Shown here: positions 14,352 through 63,682 of the stretch, piece after piece | Position numbering within the stretch: position 1 is the first letter of the stretch | How the letters are laid out: every line of letters starts with the position of its first letter | Assembly: GCA_965240325.2 (NCBI GenBank) | Contig: OZ251230.1 | Location: 2,356,001-2,420,000, forward strand | DNA: 64,000 nt | Direction of reading: 5' to 3' | Source of the DNA: Rebecca billardiae RCC1528 | Taxonomy: Eukaryota > Protista > Haptophyta | Notes under the pieces: generated by a model | What the model was told of the DNA's origin: nothing | What the model saw: only the letters and a program-made list of their open reading frames with translations | Database searches by the model: none | Made by a program: the position numbers and the translations under genes

Positions 14352-14385
<34 letters not shown>

Positions 14386-20057: not shown

Positions 20058-20201
<144 letters not shown>

Positions 20202-33012: not shown

Positions 33013-34371
33013 ATGCCGGATCAAGAGAGCGGTGCTTCCGGGACCAACCCTTGCTTCCGACCGGCTTGGCTCGGCGACGCACAACGCCAGCCGGTGCGCT
33101 ACGCGCACAAGCTGGCCGGCATGGTCGACGTGAGGAGCCGCAAGTGTGGTCACGCTAGCTGCACCAAGGTGCCTTCGTTCGGCATGCCGGGCGACGCGCG
33201 TGCCAGCCGGTGCGCTACGCACAAGCTGGCCGGCATGGTCGACGTGAGGAGCCGCAAGTGCGGTCACGCCGGCTGCACCACGGGGCCTCACTTCGGCATG
33301 CCGGGCGACGCGCGCGCCAGCCGGTGCGCTACGCACAAGCTGGCCGGCATGGTCGACGTGAGGAGCCCCAAGTGCGGTCACGCCGGCTGCACCACGCGGC
33401 CTCACTTCGGCATGCTGGGTGACGCGCGCGCCAGCCGGTGCGCTACGCACAAGCTGGCCGGCATGGTCGACGTGAAGAGCCCCAAGTGCGGTCACGCTAG
33501 CTGCACCACGTGGCCTAACTTTGGCATGCCGGGCGACGCACGCGCCAGCCGGTGCGCTACGCACAAGCTGGCCGGCATGGTCGACGTGAGGAGCCCCAAG
33601 TGCGGTCACGCCGGCTGCACCACGCGGCCTCACTTCGGCATGCCGGGTGAAGCGCGCGCCAGCCGGTGCGCTACGCACAGGCTGGCCGGCATGGTCGACG
33701 TGATGAGCCCCAAGTGCGGTCACGCCGGCTGCACCACGCAGCCTAACTTCGGCATGCTGGGTGACGCGCGCGCCAGTCGGTGCGCTACGCACAAGCTGGG
33801 CGGCATGGTCAACGTGAAGAGCCCCAAGTGTGGTCACGCGGGCTGCACCAAGCAGCCTTCGTTCGGCATGCCGGGCGACGCGCGCGCCAGCCGGTGCGCT
33901 ACTCACAAGCTGTCTGGCATGGTGTTCAGTCGGCACGCCGTCCCCAAGCGCAGGCTGGATGGCACCGGCGACCAGGGCACGCGCGCAGCGAAGCGACGGC
34001 ACAAACACACCGGCAGCATTGCGGCTGTCTCGGACGCCGCGCCGCAGCTGCCCGCACCGCCGCCGCTCGTCGCAGTCACCGTCGTCCGCTGGCGCTTGCC
34101 AGATGGCACGATCCACTCGGTTGATGACGGGGTGGTCGATGATGGTGCCCTTGCCCTGGACGAGCGGCATCAGCGTGGCAATGCAGGTGATGCCATCCGT
34201 GCTGCCCCTGGCAACTGCGACCAGGGACTACCGGCAAGCATCAACACTACCGCTGCGCCAGGACGACCATCATCATCGATGGCGGCGGGGGCAGCACAAC
34301 GGCGGCAACCACAGGACATACCTGTGGTGATGGCCAGGAGGGTCCCTGCCCGCGACGCTGCGGGCCGATGA
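33013..34371 (+). CDS. EsV-1-7-type cysteine-rich repeat protein (7 full 38-aa repeats) with bipartite NLS-like motif
   Basis: Unit KCGHAGCTxxPxFGMPGDARASRCATHKLAGMVDV, with C-x4-C...C-x2-H; 114-bp period from 33139. Followed by PKRR-x12-KRRHK. Confidence 0.75.
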   Translation: MPDQESGASGTNPCFRPAWLGDAQRQPVRYAHKLAGMVDVRSRKCGHASCTKVPSFGMPGDARASRCATHKLAGMVDVRSRKCGHAGCTTGPHFGMPGDARASRCATHKLAGMVDVRSPKCGHAGCTTRPHFGMLGDARASRCATHKLAGMVDVKSPKCGHASCTTWPNFGMPGDARASRCATHKLAGMVDVRSPKCGHAGCTTRPHFGMPGEARASRCATHRLAGMVDVMSPKCGHAGCTTQPNFGMLGDARASRCATHKLGGMVNVKSPKCGHAGCTKQPSFGMPGDARASRCATHKLSGMVFSRHAVPKRRLDGTGDQGTRAAKRRHKHTGSIAAVSDAAPQLPAPPPLVAVTVVRWRLPDGTIHSVDDGVVDDGALALDERHQRGNAGDAIRAAPGNCDQGLPASINTTAAPGRPSSSMAAGAAQRRQPQDIPVVMARRVPARDAAGR

Positions 34372-36795: not shown

Positions 36796-37060
36796 GGCCG
36801 GATCGGGGCTGTGCACTTGCCGCCGTGAGGCCGGATCGGCACCCCGACGCCGGGCGGCGGCGATCTGGTGCCGAGCGCGCGCCCTGGCCCGGGCTGGCCC
36901 TGGGGCGTTATCGGCGTCACTAGCAGCCCCGCCTGGCAGTGCGTGACGCGCACGAGCACGAGTCACCAGACGACGCGTCTGGGCACCGGGCGCCCCCGTG
37001 GCGCATGTGCGCGGTGTGCTCAGCATCATGCTGACTGACGATTGATCAACTTTTTTTTTT

Positions 37061-37730
37061 GGGAAAAGTTCAGAACCCCGCCGATTCGCGGCGGCTTGTG
37101 CAGAATCCCGCCAAATCGGCCAGAACCTCGCGAGGGGCTTTTCCGGACGCGATGTCCCCCAGAAGTCCGATTGTCGAACATTCGGGCAAGCCACGCGCAC
37201 GAAGATACCGAACCCCGCGATTGCGCCGAAACGGCGCAATCGCGTCTTTTGACGTCGCCGATTACGCGCAGTACCCGCGAAATGAACCCCGACGGCGAAA
37301 CACTTAATCAAACACGGGGTTCGCGTCGTTTCGACGCCCTCGCGTGCTGTTTCGGCCGCGGGGCCCCTCGCGGCTCTTCGGAGCCCGCAAAAAAGCCCCG
37401 AAGAGCCCCCATCGCCCCCACGCGCGCACCTCGCGCGAACGAGGTGCGCGCGCGCGCCCGACGCGCGCGCGCGCGCGCGCGTCGGGCTGCGGGCGGGGGG
37501 AGCGGGGGAGGCGCGCGATGCCGCCGCCTGCGCGCGCGCCGCCTCACGCGCGCGTGGCCTCCCGGCGCGCGCGCACGCGCTCTGTCCGCGTGCGCCTCCG
37601 TTGGTTTGCATAATGTGCACGCCCGCCTCCTGGCGAACTCGCGCGCGACGGCCGTGTGGCGCGCGCGCGCGCAGGCGGAGCTGGTTCGTGCGGCGTTACG
37701 CGCAAGCTACGTGCACAACATGCCGCCGCC
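37061..37730 (+). repeat. Left TIR of the MULE (670 bp)
   Basis: Reverse complement of 52234-52903. ORF-track translations across the two TIRs are identical. Confidence 0.95.
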
Positions 37731-40700
37731 TGCGCGCGCGCCGCCTCACGCGCGCGTGGCCTCCGGACGCGCGCGCAGGTGTCGCCCTTTGCCCGCTTTG
37801 GTGGTTGTACGACGGAACTGCTGCGCACGCAAGGACGATGGTGCGCGCGGCTGGGTGGCGGTGCTGCGCGCGGGCGGCTGGCAGAGGGTACTGCCTGCAC
37901 CGACGTGCGTGCCGGTGCCTCCAACGTCGCACCCCGCGCCCCCCACCCCCACCCCCCCCCCGCCCCTTTTGCCCGCCATCGTGCATCTGTTGCGCACCGT
38001 GCATCTGTCGCGCGCAGGCGGAGGCGTCATCTGACGTGGTGCAGCCCAGGCGCGTCGACGGCACCACTGTGCGCGCGTTGCGGATTGACGAGTTCGTCAG
38101 CGGAGCGGAGAGCGCGCTGAATGCTCTGCGGATGACTCCACAGAACACCCCGTGGGAGTTCAGCTTGGTCCTCGTGCTGTGCGTGCTGGGCTCGGTGAGC
38201 GCCGCCCAGGCTGGTGGTCGTGTTGGTGGCACCGGCTGCGTGCCGCCGGTGGTGTCGGATCTGGCGAGTGCGGAGGCGCTTCTCTGCTTCACCGAGTGCG
38301 TCGGTGTGCTGGCCTCAGCCGAGGCTGTACTGGACCTGGGCGGCGACATGGGCGGCTCTTGCGACAGGCTGTCTAGGCTGTCGTCTGCTGCCCTGTGGTT
38401 CCGCGCCCTGGCGTTTGCGGCGATGCATGGCGCCGGCTGCGCCGGCGCTCCCGGCGCCGAGCACTTGCCGGTGCCCACCTCGCTGTGCCCAGCTGGGTGT
38501 GACCCGGTGTCGTCGCCCCCGCCTGGCGATGCGCACGGCGCCGCTGCCGGAGGCGCTGCCGGCGGTGGGTTGCTAGGTCACGACCCGACCTCGGACTCGG
38601 GGGGGGGCTCTGTGGGCGGGGGTGCGCCGGCGCAACGGCGGCGGCAGGGGTCGCCGCCGCCGTTGCCTCGCGCCCCTGCTGCCATCGCGGTGCGTGCGGC
38701 ATGGGCGAGCTCGCCTCTGCAGGTGAAGGTGGCGCTCGCTGCGCTGTGCGCGCCCCGCCCGGACGCGGGGGACATACACGGCGTGTTCTCGACTGTGGAT
38801 GCGCGAGCGGGTGGCACAGGGGCTAAGCCGGCGCCGGCCGTGGAATACTACGCGCGCGCGGTGTTCGGCGCCGACGCCGGATGCCGCGAAGACCTCTTCG
38901 CCGCCTTTGTGCGCGTGGCGTCGGCGTCAGCCCCCGGCGTGTCCGACGCGCACGCGGCAGACCACCTGCGTACCCGTGCGTACACGAGCTTACGTGGGGC
39001 GCTGGCCCCCGCGCCGCCGCTTGCGGACCACGCGCTCTACATGGAGACGTCTTCGTCTGTGCAGGCGGGCCAACGGGCGGATCTGCTCTGGCGGGAACTG
39101 CTGCGCGCGCGCGCCACGTGGTTGCGCGCTGTGGACCAAGCGCTGCGCGCTGACGCCGAGTGCCGCCGTGCGGCCGGCCACGCAGTCCACGACGATGCAG
39201 ACGGTGCAGACTGCGACCGGCGGGTCGCTGCCGCGCGGGCGCTGCGCGCGTCCGTGTCTGACGTCGGCGACGACGGCCGCGCTGGGCTGACGGCCTTTCT
39301 CGACGCGTGCGAAGGGCGTGCGCTGTGCGAGGGCTGGCTGGCGCGGCCGTTGCTGCACGCGATCTCCGTCCTCGAGCGTCGCACTGTGTGGGCTGTCGTC
39401 ATCCCGCTCACGCCCGCACTGGTGCACGTCGGCGTGGGCGCACGTCTGCACCCGTTCCTCGACGCGACGTTCGCCGAAGCCTTGGTGGCCGATGCAGCGG
39501 TGGCGATGCCGCCGGTGACGCTGGTGGTGACTCTGGTCGGCGCGCACGCCGTCGCCGGCGCCGCCGCGCGCGTGTCCGGAGAAGCCGTGAGCGCGGTGTC
39601 AGGCGCTCTTTCGGCGGGGTGCCCTCGCCCGCCGGGGGTGCCGCAGGACCCCTCACCGGCCCTGCGCGCACCGCCACCGCGCCAAGCCCCGCCGAACACC
39701 CCCGCGTCGTCCCTGAGCCTGTGCGACATGCTCGTGCACAACTTGGCGGTCCAGCACGCGCTTCGCCGAGCCTTCGGCGACGCTGCGGCCACTGCCCACA
39801 GCGTTCGCATACCACCACACGCTGTGCAGGCGTTGCGCGACTACGTCTTTGTCCACGCCAGGTTAGGCGGGTCGGGCGACGCCTCCATGCCCCTCCACGC
39901 TGCGGACCATGCCCTCATCCGCACTGCACTCGCCTATCACTCCGCCGATGCCGCCGGCGTCGCCGCCGAGCAGCGCCGCTGGGGGGTGGGCGACCACGGC
40001 GCCGAGGCGGGCACGCCGACAGCGGTGCTGGACTGCCCACCATTCGCGGACGTGGTGACTACACTGCAGGCCTTCATGGAGGCGGTGTTCGACGTGGAGC
40101 ACTCCAGCCCCGTTCTCACTGCGTGGCACGTCTTCGCGCGCCCGTCGCCTGCGGACGCGCACGCGGGCGCAACCAGCGATGGCCAGACCGCAGCGGGCGA
40201 GGCCACCACATACGGCTGGCACGTGGACAGCGACATGGTGCACGACCCCCACGTCTGGACGGCCGTGCTCGTCGTGCACGTGCCGTCGCACCCCACGGGG
40301 GGGAACCCCTACCCGCTCGAGCTCCTGGACGCGGGCCCGGACGGACACCCCGTCGCCGCTCCGCTGCATGGCGGCGACGTGGAGGGCGGCGACGTGGCAG
40401 GCACCGTGCACATCTTCCCGTCCATGCTGTACCACCGCTCGGCGCAGGCGCCGCGGGGCGGGACCGCCCCTGCGCACAGCGACATGTCGGGGAAAAAGCC
40501 GCGGCGCGCGCACACTCTCGACGGCGATGTCATCAAGGCTGTGTTCTTGTTCGGGTCGCCCGAACTCGCCGCCGCGCTGCGCGCGGCGGGCCGCCACCGC
40601 AGCCCGATGGTGCTGGCCGCGCCGGCAGCCTCGCCTGCAGCTCTCGTCTCTGCGCCTGCGCCGCTCACGCCCCATCGCTTCGTCCTCACGCTCGAATCGG

Positions 40701-43700
40701 GCTTGCGGCACCTGTACAGCCGGAAGCTGCGCGCTGGCGCGCCTGGCGACGCGCAGGGCGCATTCCCCGCATTCAACATGGGCTCGCCCCAGCACCAGCA
40801 GTACGTGGCCGACTGCGTCGAACACGCGCTGGGCGACGCGCCGACGGCCGATCCCGAGGAGCTCTTGCGCGGCGTGACGCAGTGCGTGCATGTGCCGCCA
40901 GAACGCGCGCAGCGCCAATGGGCGCACTCGGCGCTTCTGCTCGCGCTCCCCGGTGCTGACAACGGCGACGCGTCGCTGACAGCTGCAGCCCGCTCGCCAC
41001 CTGCGGGCCCGCACGGGCAGCGCGACACGTCGCACGGCACGGGCCCTGTCCGTGCAGGGCCGGGGACACCGACGCCGCGCGGCGTGGACGGCCGCGCGCC
41101 AGGCGCCGACGCCGGCCCACGTCCTCCGGGGGCCATCAGCAGCTCGCCACCCGTCTGCCCCTGGCCTGCCCCCCCTCCCGCTGCGCGGGCGCCGCTGTTG
41201 TGCACGCAGGCGGACGCCTCCGCCGCCTGCACGAGCCCGTGTGTCGTCGTGGCGGTGCATGGCGCGCCGGCGTCCACGGGCTGTGACGGCGGCGGCGGCG
41301 GCGGAGGTGGTCCGCACGCCAATGCGCGCGTGCTGCGCGAAGGGTCCCCCGGCAGCGCCGATGTGCCAGACGGCGGCGAGGCGACTGGCGCGCATGGCGC
41401 CGGTGGCACTGCCGCCGCGGTTGCGCATTGCACGGCCGCGCCGACGCAGAGCGTGCTCGGCAACGCCGTGCGCCTGGGCGAGGAGCGCGTCGACGGCGCC
41501 GGACCGAGCGCGCTCGCGGGCGTTTTGGCCTCGAACGTCCAGGCTCGCGCCGTCGGTGGGCCTGGCACGGACAACGCGGACATGCCGCTGCCGCGGCCAC
41601 CACATGGTACCCTGCACTTGGCGCCACACGAGCTCAGGCTGGCATTCCGACCCGGCCAGGCCGCTCATGTCGGAGGCCACTTTCACGCGGCGACGGCGAC
41701 CGACGAACAACGGCAGGCTGCGAAGGCAGTGGGCACTGTTGTGCAGGACCTCGGCCGCAGTCGCTCGGCGCACACGCGTGCAGCTGCGAGCGGCAACGCA
41801 CCCCTTTTCGTCCTGAGCGCGGACTGGCAGACGCTCCTCCTCAGCGAGGATGGCGCGGGGGCCGTGAGTGGTGTCATCTCGCAGCCGGACGCCGGCAGTG
41901 CCGCGCTCGCGCGGATCGACGAGTGGGAGGCCACCGACCCACTCATGCTCTGTGAGGACGAGAGCGCGCGCTTCTGTCCCAGCGGCGACCGCGACGATGT
42001 GTCCGACGACGCTCGGGAGGGCTCCGCCCACGCTGGCGCAGCCGGTGCGTCAACTGCGCACGACCCGCTCGCGGCGCTTGTGACGTGCCCCCCGTCCGGC
42101 GCGTGCGCGCAGCCTACGCCCGCCACGCGCACGGCCGTCCCAGGCGCAAGCGCCGCGGCAGGCGCGCAGGGCCAGCCCTTGCCACAGCACCACGGCGGAG
42201 ATGCCGAGTACCACCCACTGCCCAAGCAGTCCAGAGCGGGGCAGCACCATGCGCTCGCGCCCGTGGAAGGCTGGAAGGTGTTGGGCTCGAGGCCGCCACG
42301 CCCGCACACGGAGGTGGTCCGTGACTCCTCGTTGGCGAGCGACACACTCGTGCGACCCGGCACGCGCTTCGAGCGCCTCGCGGACGCCATCACCCTCGCA
42401 GCGGAGTGCGCCGTGCACCGGCGGATCATGCCGCCGTCCGCCCAACTGGACCATTCCAAGCTGAGGGTGACGTGCACCACGCCGAACTGCGCGTTCCGTG
42501 TGCTGGTGGGCCCCGCGCCGGATCACGCCGTGTGGGGCCGACCGGCGTGGTACGTGGAGGCATCCTCCTCACACAGCCCGGACTGTTACAACAACGCCGG
42601 CGGCGCCGGCTCGCGCGCGAACCCAGTCACCTCGCCGAGTCGGTCGCGGACCAAGGCGCGAGTGCGCGTGTGGCCCTACTCCGCCAAGCAGTTGGGCAAG
42701 GCCGTCGAGCACGACTGGCGGGCGCGCTTGCGCGAGCGCGGCGCCACGCACGCGCAGTTGGCGTACGGCGTCACGGAGAGCAAGGCCGTCGCGCGCGCGC
42801 TCGTCCCGGAGAAGGTGGGTGAGAGCCTCGTGCGCAGGGCGCTCGCCGTCGCGCGCGAGCAGATTTACGGCGACGACAGCGCCATGTCGCGCGACCTGGT
42901 GGCAGTGACCGCCGGGCTCTCGGCGGAGGGCAACGCGGTCGCGCCGATCGTCTTCGCCGCGGACACAGTGCACAGCGACGTGCTCGCGATGTTCCGCCGT
43001 GTGCACGACAGCGCCCAGCGCTCGGTGCCGCTCGGCGCCAGGCGGCCCTTCGACCCGGAGGAGCCCTCGGTGAAGCGCGCCATTGACGAGGTGCGCGGGA
43101 AGAAGGCCGTCGGTGGCTTCCACTACGTGCCCAAGCAGGCCAAGCAGCTCTACCGTGAGCACTTCCTGGCCAAGGGCAACCGCGCCGTGTTCAGCGACGC
43201 GTGCCACCTGCACAGGCCGGCGAGCGGCGGTGGCAAGCGTGCCGGTGTGCGCCCCCCACCCCACCCCCCCCCCCCACCCCTTCCCCCCTTCCCCCCTTCC
43301 GTGTCCTGCAGGCCGCACACCCACGCACACACACACATGCACACCCGCCCTGGCACGCACATTCACCCGCACCCCGGCCTTCTCCGCCGGTGCCACCTGC
43401 GCGCGTCACAGGCATGCTCTTTGTGACGCTCGCAGTGAACGCCAACGGGCAGCTGTTCGTGCTCTGTGTGTCGTACATCGTCGACGTCGAGTGCCTAGAC
43501 TCGTGGTGCGCGCACGTGCGCTACTTGAAGCAGGAGCTGGGCGGTGACGACGTGTGGAACGTCGACGACTCCGTCACCATCTCCGACGGGCAGAAGGGCC
43601 TGCGCGGCGCGTGGAAGCTCCTCTGCCCCCGCAGGCACCTGTTCCTGTGCACCTTCCACAAGCGGGACAACTTCATCACGGGGTACGCGCACACGGCGAA

Positions 43701-46700
43701 CGACGTCAACAAGATCCTGGAGGTCTTCGACCGGTGCGTCCAGGCGTTGTACGTCGAGGACTTCGACCGGGCCTGGGCGGAGATGCCCGAGTCGGGCAAG
43801 CGCATCATCGATCTCATCCCGCGCGCCGAGCTCTTCCCTGTCTTCGCGCCGGTGTGGATGCGCGGCTACGTCACGGGCGCGCCCGCGGAGTCGTTCATGA
43901 AGTGGCTGCTCCCTGTGCGCAAGTCGCAGGGCCCGGTGTGGATGCTGCTCGACCTGCACGACAACCTCTACCGCCTCTTCGCCACGCACCGCGCCGTGGC
44001 CGTGCGCCACGCCCTCAACCCCGACCCCGATCGCGACCTGCACGGGCTGCCACCGCGGCACGTGCCGTACGTGCGCGGCGCAGTGCAGGACGCGCGCGCC
44101 ATGGGCGGCGCCGAGTGCAACCTCGTCGCCGACGGCGAGCACGCCGGTTGCTACCGCGTGCTGAGCACCACGGACCAGTCCAAAGAGCGCTTTGTGCACC
44201 TCGACAACTTCCTGTGCTGCGGGCTGCTTCGCCGCAAGCGCCTGCCGTGCTTGCACTTCTGCCTCGTGTGCAACCGCGTGAACGAGCCGGTGTGCTCGCT
44301 CCTCCCCGAGGACATGCGCAGCGCCACTTGGTACGCGCAGGTCGGGCTCGGCGTCACGCAAGCCCCGACGGGCGCAGTGCTGTCCATCACGAAGCTGGAC
44401 GTCATCACGCCGCCGCGGCGCCTCGAGGACGCTGTGCAGCCCCTTCTGCTACCGTCACAGCAGTTGCAATCGCTCTTGGCGGAGTACGTCGCCGTGCCGG
44501 CGATGCCCGCGCGCGCGGGCAGGCCGGCGAACGCGGACCGCGCGCCCAGCTTCTGGGAGCGAGGGCCGCGCGGAGGCCGCGCCCGCCGCGCGCCGCACTC
44601 GCGCTCCGAGTACGACTCAGTGCCCATCGGGCGCTCGACGCAAACGTACGTGCGGCCCTTGACCGCCGACGGCGGCTTCGCCGCGCGCGTGCGCGAAGCG
44701 GCGAACTCGACGCTCGAGCAGGTGCTCAGTGAACTCCCGTCGCACCTGTACGGCATCGCGCTCCAGGACGTGCTCTGCACGCGCAACGTCAACGTGCGCG
44801 TGGGCGGGACCGTGGCCGCGCCTCAGACGTTCAACCAGCGGCTGCGCGCCTGGTCCACGTTCGACGCGAGGACGGCGGCCCTGCTGCGCTGCTGCGCGTG
44901 CTACGACCCGCAAGCCGACGACCTCGGCGCTGCGTGGCCGGCCAGCGCGCCCCCGGTGGACCCCAGGCTAACGTGCCAGGGGTGCGCGTGCTTCATCCAC
45001 GCACCCGCGCAATGCGAGTACGTGTGGCATCTGGGTCCGATGGACAGTGGGCTGTACATGTGCACGTGCTGCTACTTCCTCCTTGTCGCCGGCGCGTGGA
45101 AGAAGCTGCGCGCGTGGCGTGCCGAGGAGGAAGGCGCGCCGGCTGCGGCGCCGCCTACGGGTGCCAGGCCGCAGGAGGCGGCGTACGCGCGCGGGCCCGG
45201 CGCGCCCCGTGCGCGCGCTGGCGGCGGCGACGGTGCGTGCGGCGGCGGGGGCGCGCGCGCCTCTGGCGCGCCAGGTGGCTCGCGCACACCTGACGCCTCC
45301 GCCGGCGCGGGTGATGCGCCCGCGAAGCCCGCCCGCCAGCCGCGCAAACCGCGCAAGAAGCCACACAGCGCGCGGGCGTACGCGGCCCAGGCTCCACCGG
45401 GCCCGTCAGTGCGCTTCGGCGCAGCGCCGCCGGCGTCGCGTGGCGCGCCGCCACGCACCTCGACGGGGGCGGGCGCGGGCACCGACGCAGCTCACGCGCG
45501 CGGCGGTGCAGTGCCACCGCCGGGTGCCGTGCCAACGGCGCCCGCGGATGACGGCGACGGTGCAGGCCCTCCTCCCTGCGCGGGCACGCCAGGGGTGGCC
45601 CCGCCAGCGCCCGGCGCGGCGAACGTCATGGCGGAGGCTGAGGCGGCATACGCCGCTCTCGGCGACCGCCACGTCGCGGTCAGGAGGGTGGTCACGAGCG
45701 CCGCCGGCGTGGGCGAGGCGTCGGCCAACCGTTTCATGCGTGCGCGCGAGCGGGCGCCCGCGCACACGTCGTTGGACAACACACTGCGCACCGCCTGGAA
45801 GACCGCCAGAAGCATTCCCGACAAGATCATCGCCCAGTTCGCAGCGCGCGCGCGGCCGGGGCGCTCGGAGGCGGGTCCGGCCGGGGCGGACGAAGGCTCT
45901 GGGTTGCCTGGCACCGCCGCGCACGAGCCGCCGTCGGCCGCAGCCCAGCTCATGCCCGAGCTCGGCCTCCCACTCGCGCGGTGGGACGCGAGCCGCGCGC
46001 GCGCGCGTGAGGCGCCATTGCTGGCGACGTCTGCCACCGGCTTGCCATTGTGGTCGCTCGCCGGGGACGGTCGGGGTGGGTCCAGGGCCCCGACCGTGGC
46101 CTACGTGCTGAAGACGTTGTTCGGCCCGACGGTGCGCGAGGTGGACGTGCCCGGCGACGGGGACTGCTTCTTCCACGCTATCCTTGCGCACGATTCGGCC
46201 GCCCTCGCGGCGGCCCCCACGCGCGCGGCGCGCAACGCGCTTATGCAGCGCATGAACGTGCGCGCCAAGCGCGCGCGCTCCGCGACGGTGTCCTACATGG
46301 CGTCGTTCTTCCACCCGACCGGCCCCAACGAGTGCGGGCCGACGATGTGGGATGGGCAGCCCATGGACGGCGAGCTTGCGGAGCGTGAGCTCGCCGGCGT
46401 CCTGGCCGTGCGCGCCGACGAGCTGCGCAAGCGCGGCACGGGCCAGGACATGGAGCTCGAGGGCCGATGGGCGGGCACGAACCGGACCAGCCTGCGGTAC
46501 GCCGCGCGTTTGTACCGTGGCGGCGCGGACTACGACTCGGCCTGGGAGGAATTCCGCCGCGGTGGCGAGTGGACGCCAGGCTCGCAGACGCAGGGCAGCG
46601 CGTCGCGTGCGCTGGGTGTGCACGTCCTGGCGTTCACCGCGCGCGGCGATCGTATGGACGCAGACAAGGTGAACCTGTTCCCGCGGGTGTCGTTGTGGCG

Positions 46701-47385
46701 GGCGCCCAAGCGAGCGCGCGATGCGGCGGCGGACAGCACCACACGCCGGAGGTGCTTCTCCGAGGGGAGCTTCGACCTGACGAAGAAGGAGGACGTGCAC
46801 GCGTTGCGCAGGCTCGACCTCGGCACCATGGGCACTGACTGGGTGGCCGTCGTGTACCACCCAGGGCACTTCCACGCGGTGGTGGATACCGGCGCGGACG
46901 CCGCGCCGGCCGCGCGCGCGCTCTCCGCGGGCGGCGAAGGGCGCTGGCCGTACGTGGCGGCGTGCGCGGAGCGTCACTGCGCGAAGGCGCGTGCACGCTG
47001 GCGTGCGCTCGTGGAGGACGACGAGACCCACAACGGGGCGTCGGAGTATCAGCCCACGCTGGCGCCACACATGGCCGACCGCATGCTGCTCTCGCGCGTG
47101 GACGAGGTCGGGCTCACTCGCTACCGTGGCGCCACGCGGCGCTTCAACACGCGGGTGTTCTCATTGCACGCGCCCGCCGGCCCCGAGGACCCCGCGGAAG
47201 GCGAGCCCATGGACTACGACAGCGCGGACGACGACCGTGTCCTCGCGCAGCCGGCACTGGACTCCCGCCTTGACGGGTACGAGGAGCACTCAGCCACTCG
47301 TTTGCTCGCGCGCTTGTCGCGGGAGCGCGCCCGGCGCGCGTCTGCGCACGCGCCCGCGGGCGCCGACGGCGGCAGTGGCGAGTAG
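37720..47385 (+). CDS. MULE transposase polyprotein (~3,120 aa; predicted exons 37720-37887, 38018-43244, 43412-47385): 2OG-Fe(II) oxygenase-like domain, MuDR-type Zn DNA-binding domain, DDE core, SWIM, PHD-like finger, OTU-like protease
   Basis: Oxygenase-like YGWHVD...HIFPSMLYH...IKAVF. DBD VTCTTPNCAFRV...HSPDC. DDE core FSDACHL, ISDGQKGL, CTFH, PAES. SWIM CCG...LPCLH. PHD-like CCAC...CQGC...H...C...CTCC. OTU VPGDGDCFFHA...YHPGHF. Exon 1 and the second donor site are inferred. Confidence 0.8.
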
Positions 47386-48179
47386 ATTGGCGGATGAAGT
47401 GGCGTCCGTGCCCCGCAGTGGGAGACGGGCACGTTACGGGGAGTTGGGCACGTGCGGGGGAAGAGATGTGGGATGTGCGTGACTGGGACTGCATGTCGAT
47501 GGGTGCATAGATGGGGGCTCGGTGAATTCGTGCCGCTTCAGATGGTCGGGGGCTGAGTCGCCCGCGGACAAGTGCAGGGCTGCCTCAGGCTCAGACGGCA
47601 CGGGGAGCTGTGTGATAAGGGTGCTCCGCATCGGCGGCACCAGCGGCTGTGTACTCCTACTGAGGCAGGTGACACTGAAGGTGACACGCCAACTCGCGGC
47701 GGGAAGCACTGTCTGTGCGGACGACGCGCACTCGGACGAAGCCGGCCGATAGAGCACCGTCGGCCAAGGACTGCGGGTGCAACTGCATGGCGGAATACGG
47801 CAAGGGCAAGGTCACTGCGCATGCGCATGCGCGCGCAGTCAGACGGTGCACCGGGTCGGCGCGCAGGCACCGGTGAGCAACGGGGGGTCAGGCGGTGTGC
47901 ACGGGCGTGGTGCCGCGCGCACCGGAGACGCGCAAGCCCGTCGCGCGGCGCGCACCAGTATGGATGGGCACGGGTAAGTGCGACACGGTGTCGCGCACTG
48001 GCCGGGCGCGCGGTGCGCGCGCACGCCGCCGCCGCGCCGCCCCACCGGCCCGGGCGCGTGCGCCCAGCGCGTGAGCAGCGACGGCGGCGGCGCACTGCTG
48101 GCGGCGGTGTGCGCCCTCGGCAGCACCGCAGCCGACGTGCGTTCGGCGCACCGCCTCCGCCCAGCGGTCGCTCGCACGG

Positions 48180-51100
48180 TCAGCGCCGGCTCGCGCCCTC
48201 GCGCGGCTCGGTCCTTGCCACCAAGCGCTCAAGGACAGTGCCGGTCTGTGCCAGCATGCGTGTGAGATCGTCTTGCTGCGCGCGCATGACGGCCAATTCG
48301 CGCTGGCCCGCTGCGGTGCGCTCTTCGATGCCGGCGGTGCGCGCTTCGATGCCGGCGGTGCGCTCGTCGAGGCCGTCGAGGCGCGTCGCGACGGGTTCGA
48401 TCATCCGCGACAGGCGCGCCGCGACAGCCTCGACGACCTCGTCGTCGCCGCGCCCGTGCTCGTCGAGGTTGATGGTGGGCACGTCGGCTTGCGAGGCGCG
48501 CGGCTGGGCAGCGCCACGTCTGGCGACTTTCCCCCCGGCCGGCGCGGCGCCCCGGGCGGGCGCGCGCGTGGTGGGCGGGCGGGTGGTCGCGGCATCCGGG
48601 GGCGCGGCAGCCCGTTGCGTGGAAGCGCGCCGCTTGCGCGCTCCGGTGGCGGCGGCAGCCGCGGGCGCGTCCGCGGGCGCGGGGGGGTGCCACGGCACGT
48701 CCAGGCGCCCCGCGTACATCTTGGGCGCGTCGGCGCCGTTCGGCGCCTCGGCGCCGCCCGCAGCGCGGGACGGCACGGGGGCAGCCGGGTGCGTCCACAG
48801 CACGTCATTGCCCCTCGGCTTCTCGTCCTGCATGATGGTGAAGCACAGCCCGCGGAAGTCGGTGATGGGGGCAGTCTCGTCCCTCAGGCCACGCTCCGTG
48901 GGGGGCGGCGCGCCAGCTCCCTGCATGGGCGGGTACGTGCACACTGTGAAGAAGAGCGTGCAGAAGTTGCCCGCGGGCTTCGGCACGCCGCGCGTGCGCT
49001 TCTGTGACTTGCGGTTTCTCATCTCCTCATACCTCCACGAGTGCGTGTTTCCGGGCACGAACATGAAGGAGAGCAAGTCCGCCGGGTTGGGCGCCCACTG
49101 CGACCCCGCATCAGCCCCCTCCACCTGGTTGTACAGGGCGATGCAGTCCTCGGACACTGCCTGGATCTCGAAGTACGGGATGCGCGCGTCGGCTGACGGC
49201 GCAGCGGACTGCTTCTGCTGCTGCTTGGCGGTGCCCCCCGACGTCGCGTCGGCGCGCGCGCCGTCGGCGCCGTCGGGGGGCGGGAGCACGAAGCGCGCGC
49301 GCGCGACGCGGACCTTGGTGAGGAACGAGTACTCGTCCGCGCGCAAGGTTTGGTAGACGTCTGCCAGCGCGTCGTAGCGCAAGTGAGGGAGGGAGACGCG
49401 CTGCGTCAGCACCGTGGCGCACGCGATCGCCGCTGCCAGGCACGTCGCCCCGGCCCCACGGCGTTTCAGAGCCTCCGCGTGGCACGCGAGTGCCGCGAGG
49501 GTGTCGCCTGAGTCGCTTCCGGCGAAGCGCGAGAAGTCGAAGGACGTGCCCATGCGCTCAGCGAGATCGAGCCAGGGTTCGATCGGCGTGCCCTCGAGCG
49601 CGCACTCGGTCGGCCTCCCGGCGAGACACACCACACGCAGCACATCCAGCAGGTCGCCAGAGGCGGGCGTGCGGTACAGCTGCGGCAGCGCATCGGGCGC
49701 GTGCGCGCGGAGACTCCCCAGGAACGCGAGCACGCCCTCTGCGATGTACGCAGCGTGCTGCAGGTGCGACTTGGGTGCGCCCGCGTCCGTCCACGTAGTG
49801 GGAGCGGCGACGCCGGTGAGGGCCGTCCAGCCCTGCGCCGTGAGCAGAATGTCGGGCGCCGCGAGCATCCCCGACGGGATTTTGGCCACCTCGTCCTCAG
49901 CGTCGAGCACCGGCGCGCCGCTAGTGCGGCTGGCTGGGCCGCCGCCGGCGCCGCCCGCAGCCGCGCGTGCGCACGCGGGCTCATCCGGCGGTGGCGGCGC
50001 CATGGACGCCAGCTGCACGGCGACGATGTCGCCTCTGCTCACGGCAGTGCCGAAGTCGGCGTCCGCGTAGTGCGTCACCTCGGCCGTCAAGGAGGTGACG
50101 AGTTCGGCTTGCTGCAGCACGCGCCACCCGTCCGTGTCCCGGACGGCGTACGCCATCTGCAGCGTCGCCTCCGCGGACGGGCGCGCCGCTGCGCCATCGC
50201 TGGCGTCGGCGCCATCGCCGCCGGCATGCGGCGCCGGGCGAGCGCGCGGGCGAGCGCGCACTGCCACCACGGCGTGCAGCAGCAGCGGAGGCGACGCCGC
50301 GGCGGGTTCCGACGAGGGCGTCGGCGCCGCGCCGCACGCCGCCGGTTTGGGCACCAGCGCGGGCCACACACGCGGGACGTTGGCGAGGTCGGCGGGGATG
50401 CCCAGCGCCGCGTGCTCAGCTGCGGTCCACAAGAGCGCCAGCGGCTGGCCCCAAGCCGATGTGCGCTGCGCGCGCGGCACGACCGACGGGCGCTCTGCGC
50501 CGGGCAGGGGCGCAGTGACGGCCAGGTGCGGGCCGGGGGCGTACGGCAAGGGCAACAGCTGGCGCCCCTCAGCCTCCTCAGCGCACTCCACGAAGTGAGC
50601 GCGCGCAGCGCGCAGGGCAGCGGCCGCGTCCGCGGCACCTGCGCCTCCCGGCGCCGGTGGTGTCGGCGGGGAGCAGGCGCTGAAAGATGCGCGCACCGCA
50701 GCCGCGACGGCGGCGGCCGGCAGGAGGGCGCCGGCTTCGGTGAGTTCGCGCACGCTCTCCACCGACGTGAGCACGGCGTGGTAACGGCGGACCACCGCCG
50801 TGCGTGAAGTCAGGCCGACCGCGTTTTGGGACGTTATTGTCCGCGCCCCGTCGCCCAGCTGCGCGCTGTGCTTGTCCATGAAGATCATGAACGACGGCTT
50901 CAGACGCGCGACAGGAGGGTGCTGCGTGAACGCCGAGGATCCGCGCGTGTCGAACGCGTGCAAAGCGGTCGGAGTGACGAAGACGGCGAGTGGCGACGGG
51001 AGTGGCGACGGCGCCGGCACCGACTGCCGCTTCGCGGCACCGCGCAAGACAGAGGTAGAACCGGCGGCGGCGCGCGGCGGCGTGAGGTGCTGGCTCACGC

Positions 51101-52244
51101 GCGCCATCATCTCCTCCGTAGTGACGCCGCCGGCATCGCCGGCGGCGTCAGCGGCGGCGGCGGCGGCAGCGGCGCTGCTGCCGCCGCCGCCGCCGCCAGG
51201 AACACCGCCGCTGCCGCCGCCGCCGCTGCCGCCGCCGCCGCCGCCGATCCCACCGCCGCTGCCGCCGCCGCCGCCTGCCCCATCGCTGGCGGCGGGGGGG
51301 ACTGCGGGGACGGTGGCGCCACCGCTCGCGGCGGCGCCGGCGCCGGCGCCGGCGCCGGTGGCGGCGGCGGCGGCGGCGGCAGCAGCGGTGTCGGCCGCGG
51401 TGGCCGCCCCGCCGGCACCGCTGCTGCAGGCGGGGCGGCCACCGGTGCCGGCAGGGCGGCCACCGCCGCCGACACCGCTGCTGCCGGCGCCGCCACCGTC
51501 ACCGCCGCTGCCGCCAGCGGCAGCGGCGGTGGCGGCAGCGGCGGTGACGGTGGCGGCGCCGGCAGCAGCGGTGCCGGGTCGGCGGCCACCGCCGCCGACA
51601 CGACGGTTCCCCCCCTTGGATGTAGTGGTGGCAGGGTCGCAGCGGCCGGTGTCGCCACCGCCGCAGCCGGCGGTGGCGACACCGGCGGCACCACCGGTGC
51701 CGCGACCGGTGGTGGCGGCGGCGGCGTCGCAGCACGTCTCCGTTGCGCGCAGGCCGCTGCGCACGCCTGCGCCGCCACCCTGGGCTGCACCACTGCCAGC
51801 ACCGCCGCCAGCGGCGACGCCGCCACCTGCATTAGCAAGTCGTGCGCTCGTGCGTGACGGCGCCTGCGAACCGGGCTGCGGCGCCGCCGCCCGCTGCGGC
51901 GACGCGCCGGGCGTGGCCACAGATGCGCCAACGCCCGTCGCGAGCGGCAGCTTCGTGAGCTGCTCTGGCGTCACCCGCCTTGGACTCGCTGCCATCTGGG
52001 GGTATAGAATCGTACCAGCTGCGAGCGCCCACTGTTCCGCGTCAACGTCGGGTAGCGGCCCGACGATGTACGTGTAAGAAGCGCGAGGCTTGCCGTCGCG
52101 CGTGGGGACTGCTTTGATCTCGCACGACAAGACAGTGGCTGGAATGCCCTCACCATCAGCAGACGCACGCTGCACGAGCACGTTCGACTTGACTTGGAAG
52201 TAGTCCTCTTTGGACTGCGGCCGCATCGACTGCGGCGGCGGCAT
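48180..52244 (-). CDS. Second MULE gene (1,354 aa, unknown function; positional analogue of mudrB), with Gly/Ala-rich linker and C-terminal coiled coil
   Basis: Uninterrupted ORF from the ATG inside the right TIR (MPPPQSMRPQSKEDYF...). Several globular-looking blocks and terminal heptads LDERTAGIEARTAGIEERT. Confidence 0.75.
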   Translation of the reverse strand: MPPPQSMRPQSKEDYFQVKSNVLVQRASADGEGIPATVLSCEIKAVPTRDGKPRASYTYIVGPLPDVDAEQWALAAGTILYPQMAASPRRVTPEQLTKLPLATGVGASVATPGASPQRAAAPQPGSQAPSRTSARLANAGGGVAAGGGAGSGAAQGGGAGVRSGLRATETCCDAAAATTGRGTGGAAGVATAGCGGGDTGRCDPATTTSKGGNRRVGGGGRRPGTAAAGAATVTAAAATAAAAGGSGGDGGGAGSSGVGGGGRPAGTGGRPACSSGAGGAATAADTAAAAAAAAATGAGAGAGAAASGGATVPAVPPAASDGAGGGGGSGGGIGGGGGGSGGGGSGGVPGGGGGGSSAAAAAAAADAAGDAGGVTTEEMMARVSQHLTPPRAAAGSTSVLRGAAKRQSVPAPSPLPSPLAVFVTPTALHAFDTRGSSAFTQHPPVARLKPSFMIFMDKHSAQLGDGARTITSQNAVGLTSRTAVVRRYHAVLTSVESVRELTEAGALLPAAAVAAAVRASFSACSPPTPPAPGGAGAADAAAALRAARAHFVECAEEAEGRQLLPLPYAPGPHLAVTAPLPGAERPSVVPRAQRTSAWGQPLALLWTAAEHAALGIPADLANVPRVWPALVPKPAACGAAPTPSSEPAAASPPLLLHAVVAVRARPRARPAPHAGGDGADASDGAAARPSAEATLQMAYAVRDTDGWRVLQQAELVTSLTAEVTHYADADFGTAVSRGDIVAVQLASMAPPPPDEPACARAAAGGAGGGPASRTSGAPVLDAEDEVAKIPSGMLAAPDILLTAQGWTALTGVAAPTTWTDAGAPKSHLQHAAYIAEGVLAFLGSLRAHAPDALPQLYRTPASGDLLDVLRVVCLAGRPTECALEGTPIEPWLDLAERMGTSFDFSRFAGSDSGDTLAALACHAEALKRRGAGATCLAAAIACATVLTQRVSLPHLRYDALADVYQTLRADEYSFLTKVRVARARFVLPPPDGADGARADATSGGTAKQQQKQSAAPSADARIPYFEIQAVSEDCIALYNQVEGADAGSQWAPNPADLLSFMFVPGNTHSWRYEEMRNRKSQKRTRGVPKPAGNFCTLFFTVCTYPPMQGAGAPPPTERGLRDETAPITDFRGLCFTIMQDEKPRGNDVLWTHPAAPVPSRAAGGAEAPNGADAPKMYAGRLDVPWHPPAPADAPAAAAATGARKRRASTQRAAAPPDAATTRPPTTRAPARGAAPAGGKVARRGAAQPRASQADVPTINLDEHGRGDDEVVEAVAARLSRMIEPVATRLDGLDERTAGIEARTAGIEERTAAGQRELAVMRAQQDDLTRMLAQTGTVLERLVARTEPREGASRR

Positions 52245-52903
52245 GTTGTGCACGTAGCTTGCGCGTAACGCCGCACGAACCAGCTCCGCCTGCGCGCGCG
52301 CGCGCCACACGGCCGTCGCGCGCGAGTTCGCCAGGAGGCGGGCGTGCACATTATGCAAACCAACGGAGGCGCACGCGGACAGAGCGCGTGCGCGCGCGCC
52401 GGGAGGCCACGCGCGCGTGAGGCGGCGCGCGCGCAGGCGGCGGCATCGCGCGCCTCCCCCGCTCCCCCCGCCCGCAGCCCGACGCGCGCGCGCGCGCGCG
52501 CGTCGGGCGCGCGCGCGCACCTCGTTCGCGCGAGGTGCGCGCGTGGGGGCGATGGGGGCTCTTCGGGGCTTTTTTGCGGGCTCCGAAGAGCCGCGAGGGG
52601 CCCCGCGGCCGAAACAGCACGCGAGGGCGTCGAAACGACGCGAACCCCGTGTTTGATTAAGTGTTTCGCCGTCGGGGTTCATTTCGCGGGTACTGCGCGT
52701 AATCGGCGACGTCAAAAGACGCGATTGCGCCGTTTCGGCGCAATCGCGGGGTTCGGTATCTTCGTGCGCGTGGCTTGCCCGAATGTTCGACAATCGGACT
52801 TCTGGGGGACATCGCGTCCGGAAAAGCCCCTCGCGAGGTTCTGGCCGATTTGGCGGGATTCTGCACAAGCCGCCGCGAATCGGCGGGGTTCTGAACTTTT
52901 CCC
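52234..52903 (-). repeat. Right TIR of the MULE (670 bp)
   Basis: Reverse complement of 37061-37730. Confidence 0.95.
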
Positions 52904-52978
52904 TTTTTTTTTTCATCATCGATCCATATCATACGGTACTTGTATATCATCTTCTCACTCTGCAGCAACCCGTGAACG

Positions 52979-54889
52979 ATGGCGGATTCGACGACTAGCC
53001 CTGCGGTCAGGCTCCTCTTACGCAAGTCGGCGCGTGGGGACGCGCGTGCGACGTTCCTTCTGGCGCGGCGGGCTGAGGATGGCGAGGGCATCGCACAGGA
53101 CCACCGCGAAGCCTTTCGCCTGTACACCCTCGCCGCTGAGCGCAGCTTTGCAGATGCGCAGACGAAGATGGGCCACATCTACGTGAACGGCGCGCTTGGG
53201 CAGCCAAAGGACCTCGAGGCAGCAGCGCGCTGGTACCGGCTGGCGGCCGAGCAGGGCTACGCTCCGGCGCAGTGCAATCTGGGCCTGCAGTACGCACACG
53301 GCAAGGGCGTGCCGCAGGACTGGGGCGAGGCTGTGCGCTGGTTCCGGCTGGCGGCCGAGCAGGGTTACGCTCAGGCGCAGTGCAATCTGGGCGTGCGGTA
53401 CGCACAAGGCGAGGGCGTGCCGCAGGACTGGGGCGAGGCGGTGCGCTGGTTCCGGCTGGCGGCCGAGCAGGGCCACGCACTCGCGCAGTGCAATCTGGGC
53501 CTGCAGTACGCACAAGGCGAGGGCGTGCCGCAGGACTGGGGCGAGGCGGTGCGCTGGTTCCGGCTGGCGGCCGAGCAGGGCGACGCGCAGGCGCAGTGCA
53601 ATCTGGGCGTGCAGTACGCACACGGCAAGGGCGTGCCGCAGGACTGGGGCGAGGCGGTGCGCTGGTTCCGGCTGGCGGCCGAGCAGGGTTACGCTCAGGC
53701 GCAGTGCAATCTGGGCGTGCGGTACGCACGAGGCGAGGGCGTGCCGCAGGACTGGGGCGAGGCGGTGCGCTGGTTCCGGCTGGCAGCCGAGCAGGGCTAC
53801 GCTCAGGCGCAGTGCAATCTGGGCGTGCGGTACGCACGAGGCGAGGGCGTGCCGCAGGACTGGGGCGAGGCTGTGCGCTGGTTCCGGCTGGCAGCCGAGC
53901 AGGGCGACGCTCAGGCGCAGTGCCATCTGGGCGTGCGGTACGCACTAGGCGAGGGCGTGCCGCAGGACTGGGGCGAGGCTGTGCGCTGGTACCGGCTGGC
54001 GGCCGAGCAGGGCCACGCACTCGCGCAGTGCAATCTGGGCGTGCAGTACGCACGAGGCGAGAGCGTTCCGCAGGACTGGGGCGAGGCTGTGCGCTGGTAC
54101 CGGCTGGCGGCCGAGCAGGGCGACGCGCAGGCGCAGTGCAATCTGGGCGTGCGGTACGCACAAGGCGAGGGCGTGCCGCAGGACTGGGGCGAGGCGGTGC
54201 GCTGGTTCCGGCTGGCAGCCGAGCAGGGCTACGCTCAGGCGCAGTGCAATCTGGGCCTGCAGTACGCACAAGGCGAGGGCGTGCCGCAGGACTGGGGCGA
54301 GGCGGTGCGCTGGTACCGGCTGGCGGCCGAGCAGGGCCACGCACTCGCGCAGTGCAATCTGGGCGTGCAGTACGCACAAGGCGAGGGCGTGCCGCAGGAC
54401 TGGGGCGAGGCGGTGCGCTGGTTCCGGCTGGCGGCCGAGCAGGGCCACGCACTCGCGCAGTGCAATCTGGGCCTGCAGTACGCACAAGGCGAGGGCGTGC
54501 CGCAGGACTGGGGCGAGGCGGTGCGCTGGTTCCGGCTGGCTACTCAGGGAGGGAGCGCACATGGGCACATTCGGCTTGGAGCGCTGACGCTGCACGGCAC
54601 TGGAGTGGAGCGTGATGTGGAGGAGGCAGCTCGGCTGTTGCACCGTGGCCAAGAGCTCGATCCAGCCCTCGGAGACCGTGTACGCGAGGTCCTGGCCGTG
54701 GAGGCTGGAGAGCGTGACGTGGTCTCCACGTGCTGCATCGCCTGCGGACGGACAGGCCGTGGGCTCAAGAAGTGCGAGCGGTGCCATGTGGCGGTCTTCT
54801 GCTCGCGTGAGCACCTGCGCAGCTCGTGGAAGGTGCACAAGCCCCACTGCAACGCGTGGGCTTCGCAGTGCGATGAGGAGGCAAGGTGA
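52979..54889 (+). CDS. Sel1-like repeat protein with C-terminal MYND finger (copy 2; 12 near-identical repeats)
   Basis: N- and C-terminal caps nearly identical to 18025-19731, but repeat number and order differ. Confidence 0.92.
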   Translation: MADSTTSPAVRLLLRKSARGDARATFLLARRAEDGEGIAQDHREAFRLYTLAAERSFADAQTKMGHIYVNGALGQPKDLEAAARWYRLAAEQGYAPAQCNLGLQYAHGKGVPQDWGEAVRWFRLAAEQGYAQAQCNLGVRYAQGEGVPQDWGEAVRWFRLAAEQGHALAQCNLGLQYAQGEGVPQDWGEAVRWFRLAAEQGDAQAQCNLGVQYAHGKGVPQDWGEAVRWFRLAAEQGYAQAQCNLGVRYARGEGVPQDWGEAVRWFRLAAEQGYAQAQCNLGVRYARGEGVPQDWGEAVRWFRLAAEQGDAQAQCHLGVRYALGEGVPQDWGEAVRWYRLAAEQGHALAQCNLGVQYARGESVPQDWGEAVRWYRLAAEQGDAQAQCNLGVRYAQGEGVPQDWGEAVRWFRLAAEQGYAQAQCNLGLQYAQGEGVPQDWGEAVRWYRLAAEQGHALAQCNLGVQYAQGEGVPQDWGEAVRWFRLAAEQGHALAQCNLGLQYAQGEGVPQDWGEAVRWFRLATQGGSAHGHIRLGALTLHGTGVERDVEEAARLLHRGQELDPALGDRVREVLAVEAGERDVVSTCCIACGRTGRGLKKCERCHVAVFCSREHLRSSWKVHKPHCNAWASQCDEEAR

Positions 54890-63313: not shown

Positions 63314-63532
63314 TGCTGCTGAGGACGAGCGTAGTCGTCGAGCAGCGTCACCGGGCGGCTGATGACGACGACTACGTTAGATAGATATAATAGTACGCGT
63401 GCTTCACAGGCCGCGCGCCCCATATACTACTGATAACCGTCGGATGTGATCAGAATGACGATTAACGCGCAGCAGTATAGGGCAGCGGGCTCCGAGCGGC
63501 GCCGTCCCGCCTCCCGGGCGTCCGCTGTACAG

Positions 63533-63533
<1 letters not shown>

Positions 63534-63594
<61 letters not shown>

Positions 63595-63598
63595 TATA

Positions 63599-63682
<84 letters not shown>

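Follow-up and report, generated by a model that had tools for sequence, protein, structure and literature searches.

Maize MuDR (mudrA/mudrB) combines long terminal inverted repeats (TIRs), a 9-bp target-site duplication (TSD) and a DDE transposase with a convergent second gene that is read from the opposite TIR. The element analyzed here, from a 64,000-nt stretch of DNA of the haptophyte Rebecca billardiae (hereafter the window), shares this organization, but is approximately three times larger and has 670-bp TIRs; its ~3,100-aa transposase adds oxygenase-like, PHD-like and OTU-like domains, and its partner gene encodes 1,354 aa without a detectable family. Grapevine MULEs resemble it in size range, long TIRs (710 bp in Mutavine-7) and 9-bp TSDs (PMC2528002). 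A sequence-only reading of the locus had put the size at about three times that of MuDR, which is not unprecedented, as Mutavine-1 and Mutavine-18 measure 17.7 and 16.2 kb, respectively (PMC2528002). However, the grapevine elements are mostly old and include many deleted copies (PMC2528002), whereas the family described here comprises three intact copies that are 84% coding.

As in our element, the DDE-SWIM core is followed toward the C-terminus by a papain-like ubiquitin/SUMO-type protease in Medicago MULE-OTU, Hydra MuDR-6_HM and Ulp1-bearing plant MULEs (PMC1702500, PMC6446971, PMC2836005). The portions of these reports available to us describe neither a 2OG-Fe(II) oxygenase nor a 1,500-aa N-terminal extension, and the OTU domain of our element is very divergent. 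Fusions of OTU and PHD domains to MULE transposases are already known, and element size alone is also not new.

VANDAL elements are not known to have long TIRs. In Arabidopsis, they carry an extra MULE gene, VANC, with conserved and highly variable regions (PMC5735166), which offers a functional analogy for our partner gene. The anti-silencing activity of VANC has been demonstrated, whereas the partner gene is linked to it by analogy only and not by a demonstrated sequence similarity. A 2OG-Fe(II) dioxygenase, the AlkB m6A demethylase, is carried by an orchid Gypsy element and was proposed to act against host surveillance (PMC9289625). That element belongs to another class and encodes the enzyme in a separate ORF, whereas the oxygenase-like domain here is fused in frame and resembles viral PKHD/prolyl-hydroxylase-type oxygenases, not AlkB. 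TET/JBP with KDZ transposons are further 2OG-oxygenase-bearing mobile elements.

Structure of the element and its target site

Alignment of the left (37061-37730, + strand) and right (52234-52903, – strand) TIRs showed that the two arms are 100% complementary over 670 nt, with 14,503 nt between them. Long TIRs are typical of the Mutator/MULE superfamily, and those of this family are perfect in 3/3 copies. The left TIR begins with GGGAAAAG, an ATG at 37720 opens its last 11 nt, and a 58-nt direct repeat on the + strand (37518-37777; units at 37518-37575 and 37720-37777, 97%) crosses its inner boundary. The transposase gene lies on the + strand, and a convergent second gene (52244-48180), whose ATG lies within the right TIR, gives a MuDR-type layout in which the 3΄ ends of both genes converge on a spacer at 47386-48179. 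The proposal of two giant convergent genes enclosed by perfect 670-bp TIRs was thus confirmed. Approximately 13.3 kb (84%) of the 15.8-kb element is coding, close to the ~13.4 kb of open coding sequence claimed previously, although the + strand gene is spliced and not a single ORF.

Ten T's flank each end of the element, as stated in the sequence-only reading, but T10 was dropped as the TSD because two siblings of the element (contigs C24 and C27) carry exact 9-bp duplications (TTAAAACAT and TATATAATA, respectively). The TSD here is therefore most likely T9 inside the T10 runs (37052-37060 on the left and 52904-52912 on the right), and the empty site should hold T11. The length of 9 bp at C24 and C27, with which the T run is compatible, falls within the range of 8-11 bp for MULEs (PMC6446971). 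Among the TSD bases of the three copies, 26/27 are A or T, while the window is ~70% GC. A Sel1 paralog in the window was rejected as an empty site, as its homology ends at 52971, before reaching the insertion point. The right TSD itself lies 75 nt upstream of a Sel1-repeat/MYND gene.

Copies, recent mobility and a sister family

BLAST searches for other copies, as the sequence-only reading had proposed, identified two further full-length copies, giving three on three contigs, each with its own flanks and TSD. The siblings are 99.7-99.8% identical to the element at aligned bases, and the copies are 0.16-0.30% apart; no deletion derivatives of the family were found beside the three intact copies. 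Moreover, short public contigs (trace DNA contigs from one sample) match interior pieces exactly. Judged from its sequence, this 15.8-kb Mutator-type transposon of a very GC-rich eukaryote is genuine, intact and recently mobile. Its reading as an autonomous-type MULE and its MuDR-like convergent two-gene layout are likewise supported.

Each of the three copy-specific TIR sequence variants occurs in the left as well as the right arm of its copy. Identical TIRs therefore give no date for the insertion, and the argument that they mark a very recent event was ruled out, although the small divergence among the three copies does uphold recent mobility. Periodic re-symmetrisation of TIRs was described for Mu (PMC10401008), and here the two TIRs of each copy are probably homogenised by inter-arm conversion around transposition or repair.

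The same genome contains a sister MULE family of 10 copies, compared with three for the element, that shares its domain order, intron position and a homologous partner gene. Amino acid identity between the families is 33-68% overall (core, 68%; extra domains, 33-50%), and BLAST detected no similarity between their TIRs. Across the 10 copies, the partner gene and every extra domain are retained in open frames and in the same order, and searches of this genome detected no host sequence from which the extra domains could have been captured.

Transposase gene

The transposase is encoded by one spliced gene of ~3,100 aa, in which two long + strand frames (37286-43426 and 43159-47385) are joined by a GT-AG intron; spliced gene models were searched exon by exon. 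A short exon 1 and intron 1 probably occupy 37731-38017, with a poly-C tract that differs by 1 and 4 nt among copies and an acceptor AG ending at 38017. Exon 2 (38018-43244, ~1,740 codons) holds the N-terminal domain, the oxygenase-like domain, a linker, a zinc finger and the first catalytic Asp, and exon 3 (43412-47385, ~1,324 codons) runs to the stop codon. Intron 2 (43245-43411, 167 nt; GT...AG, phase 1, poly-C/CA-rich) has counterparts of 161 and 159 nt in the two siblings, and its position is common to the sister family and three metagenomic relatives, while its interior is not conserved. We rejected the 3,254-codon frame of C27 as an intronless gene, as its 159-nt intron is simply a multiple of three.

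The MULE catalytic core (43190-43896) is split by intron 2 and comprises D (43196), D (43585), CxxH (43648-43659) and E (43888). No variation was seen at the second D, CxxH or E in 13/13 sequences, and the first D was seen in relatives. Upstream lies a putative zinc finger of the WRKY-GCM1/MuDR type (42473-42586, C-x4-C...H-x3-C), with a comparable motif upstream of the DDE domain in metagenomic locus L048, and downstream a SWIM-like zinc finger (44215-44256) with conserved cysteines; both were read by eye and had no Pfam match on the transposase. Long disordered linkers separate the transposase domains. The best Pfam match of the transposase was MULE, under the cut-off (E 0.006-0.008); a weaker relative, P0015, scores above the cut-offs for MULE and SWIM, and matches to MULE, Transposase_mut and SWIM were obtained among the relatives. 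The nearest database proteins are 24-33% identical and the lineage appears to be uncatalogued, in agreement with the earlier suggestion of an undescribed lineage. Word-index protein searches with core and oxygenase queries found nothing useful, and scans of viral and metagenome loci gave no informative result.

Domains fused to the transposase

The N-terminal domain (38078-39613, + strand, ~510 aa) had no match in Pfam, PHROG or NCBIfam, and is 50% identical in 10/10 sister-family copies. It is followed, upstream of the DDE core, by a probable 2OG-Fe(II) dioxygenase domain (39758-40570, + strand), which would adopt a double-stranded beta-helix fold. Its H-x-D motif spans 40220-40228 and its distal His 40433-40435, and the last strand lies at ~40529-40552. 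Using an independent profile of 24 phage oxygenases, we found this segment to be the only notable match among 215 window ORFs (E 0.019), with a score of 13.1 bits against ≤4.9 in 2,000 shuffles and both motifs of the iron triad H-x-D...H in register. The Atlas comparison also gave 0.94 to viral 2OG clusters. Pfam, PHROG, NCBIfam and PDB returned no match for the domain, its single-sequence structure model reached a pLDDT of 34, and its last strand, after a 30-aa insert, carries Lys, the usual 2OG-binding Arg not being evident. In phages, tblastn yielded chance matches only, and the blank result of a narrower oxygenase profile is uninformative because known oxygenases were missed too. A literature search found no report of an oxygenase-MULE transposase fusion. 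In the C24 copy, H-x-D is lost via a compensated frameshift, and the downstream transposase frame and the TSDs are intact; the oxygenase may thus be dispensable in cis or may have been lost after insertion.

Downstream of the core, a PHD-like C4-H-C3 finger (44890-45075, + strand) has 8/8 ligands invariant in six sequences. These align to BRD1 PHD1 in a weak match (E 0.22), and the model (pLDDT 68) retrieved mixed generic treble-clef fingers, none significant, in a fold search. The last domain is an OTU-like cysteine protease (46090-46920, + strand) with a Cys box (46153-46173, Cys 46165) and a His-loop motif read by eye (46861-46881). Structures of bacterial and viral OTUs were retrieved through its D-G-x-C box, the best at E 0.003 for a viral OTU, and the domain has no Pfam match and is retained in the sister family. 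The protease domain is OTU-like and deubiquitinase-like, with a predicted activity. The enzymatic cargo previously proposed is therefore present as enzyme-like domains, which are fused in frame inside the transposase and are not separate captured genes.

Partner gene

The partner gene (48180-52244, – strand) encodes a conserved 490-aa domain (48705-50177), a low-complexity Gly/Ala middle and a C-terminal coiled coil, and is an orphan with no match in Pfam, PHROGs, NCBIfam, Atlas or PDB. Comparison of the three copies revealed 24 amino-acid-changing and 2 silent codon differences (pN/pS ~4.6, versus 0.6 for the transposase), a signal based on these 26 codons. The non-synonymous density of 0.0082 is three times the pooled non-coding and synonymous rate of 0.0027 (p ~0.001). 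Another reading frame does not explain these sites, as all alternatives contain stops. This result suggests that the partner gene changes unusually fast, as might be expected for a tool against host silencing.

Discussion

The element is likely to be an autonomous-type DNA transposon of the Mutator-like kind that is young and structurally complete. By analogy with the family, the transposase zinc finger would bind the TIRs, the element would be cut out and inserted with a stagger of 9 bp, and the TIRs would drive transcription of both genes, as they do in maize MuDR. We consider it somewhat more probable than not that the fused domains have been selected for accessory functions that sustain mobility in the face of chromatin- and ubiquitin-based host control. 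The oxygenase may hydroxylate or demethylate some substrate, and the PHD-like finger may provide an anchor on chromatin or on a partner. The OTU domain may either trim a polyprotein or strip ubiquitin where transposition or repair takes place, and the partner gene may supply a MURB/VANC-like helper function in an evolutionary arms race between element and host.

The extra sequence could instead be passively captured host DNA with no role in transposition, as in Pack-MULE-like transduplication. MULEs often pick up host fragments (PMC6446971), one copy tolerates the loss of H-x-D and both proteins are largely low-complexity; however, the reading frame of the transposase runs through the extras, whose order is kept in a sister family of only 33-68% identity, and in C24 compensation of the frameshift saves the transposase frame downstream. 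Pack-MULEs are non-autonomous and carry host gene fragments, whereas the transposase here is intact and no host donor was found, and we regard passive capture as improbable. A polyprotein, in which the OTU-like protease mainly frees a transposase of normal size and has no anti-ubiquitin role, is somewhat less improbable. The disordered linkers would suit this arrangement, and cleavage was proposed for the Medicago MULE-OTU fusions (PMC1702500), but the closest structures are viral OTUs, and a ubiquitin/SUMO role has been suggested for the OTU and Ulp1 domains that are found repeatedly in Ginger, Helitron and Mutator elements (PMC2836005). An assembly artefact could account for perfectly identical TIRs, but three copies on three contigs with distinct flanks, exact 9-bp TSDs at the siblings and copy-specific TIR variants make it very unlikely, as do the public contigs that match the interior.

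For the partner gene, relaxed constraint, synonymous GC3 selection or assembly errors in place of diversifying selection form a less favored but appreciable alternative. Only three copies were sampled, a GC3 of 0.84-0.89 could hold down synonymous change, and some changes are clustered multi-nucleotide events. Nevertheless, relaxed constraint cannot outrun the neutral rate, which the non-synonymous density exceeds threefold, and random assembly errors would not spare third positions. Under the favored reading of selected accessory activities, it is conceivable, if speculative, that in an algal lineage of Mutator elements one polypeptide with a catalytically active 2OG-Fe(II) oxygenase, a chromatin-binding finger and a deubiquitinase would form, together with a diversifying partner gene, a self-contained anti-silencing system, unlike VANC or TET/AlkB capture.

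Viral OTUs are a class known as deubiquitinases. To our knowledge, the mechanism by which DNA transposons evade silencing is known in few cases, such as VANC. The element offers separable and testable parts, namely the oxygenase-like domain, the OTU-like protease and the fast-changing partner protein. A single genome holds two young families with these parts, and a natural copy without the oxygenase motif already exists (C24). As a recent plant-wide TIR screen used a 12-kb length limit (PMC12973397) and the transposase scores below the Pfam cut-off, standard pipelines would miss this element. The family also provides a clean case of within-element TIR homogenisation, and warns against the use of TIR identity to estimate the age of DNA transposons.

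Copies, target sites and terminal inverted repeats

We aligned the two TIRs of the element (37061–37730 and 52234–52903) and found 670-nt arms with 100% complementarity, in agreement with the sequence-only reading. Searching the 72-Mb, 41-contig assembly with the TIR and comparing TSDs, as that reading had proposed, gave exactly six full TIR matches, which pair as three elements: the window copy (37061–52903; 15,843 bp) and siblings at C24:1204488–1220361 (15,874 bp) and C27:988667–1004512 (15,846 bp). No deletion derivatives of the element were found in searches of the assembly. In searches of public reads, the element appeared in no RNA run and no second strain, and a single sample yielded trace contigs of uncertain origin. 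Both siblings are flanked by exact 9-bp TSDs (TTAAAACAT and TATATAATA). The ten T's reported at both ends of the window copy are present, but the siblings indicate a duplication of 9 bp, not 10; the TSD of the window copy is therefore most simply read as T9, with a T11 empty site. Across the three copies, 26 of 27 target bases are A or T, and all three targets are AT-rich islands; the GC content of the window is ~70%.

The window copy lies 75 nt upstream of a Sel1-repeat/MYND gene (52979–54889), whose paralog occupies 18025–19731; the two are 97% identical at the 5΄ end, differ in the length of their 108-nt repeat arrays and become homologous a few bases before the ATG. The window also contains an EsV-1-7 cysteine-rich repeat protein whose units are 114 nt long (33013–34371), a 2,053-aa ORF on the minus strand (11087–17251) that joins VHS and TPR to a kinesin motor domain at the C terminus, and long TA microsatellites and a 64-nt tandem array (20055–20200, 63530–63655 and 5774–6223).

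An assembly artefact could in principle create an inverted repeat; this is very unlikely, because the three copies have independent flanks, each with its own TSD. The arms are identical within every copy (670, 670 and 669 nt), and TIRs differ between copies: a substitution private to the window copy (offset 232) is present in both arms, and the C27 copy likewise has a substitution and a deletion of its own, each in both arms. Independent mutations would not mirror in this way, and polishing with short reads would tend to erase between-copy differences; the two arms of each copy have probably been homogenised. In maize Mu, TIR re-symmetrisation has been described, and its proposed cause is conversion, either in the course of transposition or following a break (PMC10401008). 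Since variants are mirrored, TIR identity is no clock for the window insertion and loses the meaning of recency that it had been given. The youth of the element nevertheless holds, and the evidence for it is the low divergence among copies (0.16–0.30% of aligned bases) and the intact TSDs.

Transposase gene and its domains

The window copy contains two long frames on the plus strand, separated by a C- and CA-rich GT...AG segment (43245–43411) that measures 167 nt here, 161 nt in the C24 copy and 159 nt in the C27 copy. The sister family (10 copies; core 68% identical to the element, read as sequence in 4.3 kb around the core and elsewhere compared by coordinates and identities) carries, at the identical phase-1 position, a GT...AG segment that is 110 nt long and differs in sequence, and a phase-1 segment occupies the same site in three of the five metagenomic relatives covering it (L048, L050 and L052; 24–32% identity). 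Because the position is shared and the sequence is not, we read 43245–43411 as an intron. A 3,254-codon read-through in the C27 copy was rejected as accidental, its 159-nt segment being divisible by three. Exons 2 and 3 together comprise ~3,066 codons, and a poly-C tract near 37940, varying in length by 1 and 4 nt among copies, suggests that a first intron ends at 38017.

Searched exon by exon, the transposase had MULE as its top Pfam match, below the cut-off. An exhaustive search yielded 24 relatives at 24–33% identity; of the ten that were scanned, the majority hit MULE or Transposase_mut and two hit SWIM. All 13 sequences compared keep the second Asp, CxxH and Glu, and the core appears to be flanked by a WRKY-GCM1-like finger before it and a SWIM-like finger after it. 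Two unrelated conventional MULE domains exceed the Pfam cut-off elsewhere in the assembly (C23:328244–328534 and C10:1918801–1919085).

A C4-H-C3 finger retains all eight of its ligands unchanged across six sequences, of which four are metagenomic. The best PDB match of its profile was the BRD1 PHD, with ligands in register (E 0.22), and fold searches returned mixed treble-clef fingers; the finger is thus PHD-like, a candidate PHD. The metagenomic entries L048–L050 and P0012 carry the same finger. The C-terminal domain is OTU-like: its structural matches are viral OTUs (E 0.003), and it is kept at 33% identity in the sister family. Exon 2 starts with a ~510-aa domain that matches nothing in Pfam, PHROG or NCBIfam and is 50% conserved in the sister family. 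In L049, a different frame contains an OTU-like Cys-box motif (150–350) immediately before the first Asp of the transposase, possibly inside an intron or in an overlapping exon. The shared phase-1 intron and PHD-like finger in metagenomic relatives point to a wider uncatalogued clade.

An oxygenase-like segment

The oxygenase segment had no match in the protein-family libraries searched (Pfam, PHROG, NCBIfam and PDB), and a single-sequence structure model gave no usable fold. In Atlas, the segment falls among viral 2OG-Fe(II) oxygenase clusters, at 0.94. We then compared a profile of 24 phage proteins (annotated oxygenases together with neighbours that bear the motif), picked without reference to the element sequence, with the 215 six-frame ORFs of the window, and the segment was the only notable match (E 0.019); the choice of profile family was prompted by Atlas, so that the two lines are not fully independent. 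The H-x-D and distal His of the segment fall on the ligands of the profile, and the score was 13.1 bits, compared with at most 4.9 in 2,000 shuffles and 7–150 for left-out profile members. The region is 49% conserved in all 10 sister-family copies. Identity as a 2OG-Fe(II) oxygenase is accordingly quite likely from these comparisons; catalytic activity is less so, because no 2OG-binding Arg stands out. The C24 copy has deletions of 5 nt and 1 nt (equivalent to 39868–40297) that replace ~143 residues, including the H-x-D, before the frame is restored; it is a naturally oxygenase-minus copy whose transposase frame stays open. The 1-nt deletion falls within a run of G's and may be an error. If real, the deletions suggest joint translation of the front half and the transposase, and an oxygenase that is dispensable in cis.

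Partner gene

The partner gene (52244–48180, minus strand; 1,354 aa) has its ATG within the right TIR. It matched no named family in Pfam, PHROGs, NCBIfam or Atlas. Its frame is the only stop-free one there, codon-position GC in the conserved part (0.69/0.56/0.89) matches the transposase, and sister-family homologues (38–41% identity) occupy the same convergent position. Codon differences among the three copies comprise 24 non-synonymous and 2 synonymous in the partner gene (pN/pS 4.6), and 12 non-synonymous and 7 synonymous in the transposase (pN/pS 0.62; Fisher P = 0.024 for the contrast). The density of non-synonymous differences in the partner gene is threefold the pooled non-coding and synonymous rate (P ~ 0.001). 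These small numbers are suggestive of diversifying selection.

C22:460718–494022 contains two sister-family copies, ~19.8 kb apart and oriented alike, the first with a shorter partner-gene frame (1,107 codons versus about 2,013). Another homologue (C7:3187426–3188691), on a contig with no transposase match, is a truncated or non-autonomous sister copy.

Proposed mechanism and comparison with known systems

From its anatomy and family knowledge, the DDE core would perform cut-and-paste transposition with a 9-bp stagger at AT-rich targets, and both genes may be driven by promoters within the TIRs, as in MuDR. The accessory domains are probably under selection, because their order is kept in two families whose TIRs no longer align. 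Most likely they would shield the element against control by host chromatin and ubiquitin; as a live alternative, the OTU domain may cleave its own polyprotein (PMC1702500). The partner gene could be a MURB/VANC-like helper: MURB binds the MURA N-terminus (PMC12973397), a possible parallel for the long N-terminal extension of this transposase.

TIRs, TSD and catalytic motifs all place the element in the MULE superfamily. Grapevine MULEs are precedents for large size and long TIRs (PMC2528002); MULEs of Medicago and Hydra are known to carry OTU fusions, and related elements PHD fusions (PMC1702500, PMC6446971 and PMC2836005); and the 2OG oxygenase of orchid Gypsy elements is a separate AlkB ORF (PMC9289625). 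No Mutator transposase with a fused oxygenase was found in the literature searched, which was without Repbase and most subscription journals, and the metagenomic contigs L048, L050 and L052 are too short to show an oxygenase. Size, long TIRs, OTU/PHD fusions and a transposon-borne 2OG oxygenase as a separate ORF are thus known beforehand; added here are the 9-bp TSD, the conserved intron, independent-profile support for the oxygenase, mirrored TIR variants and a selection signal in the partner gene.
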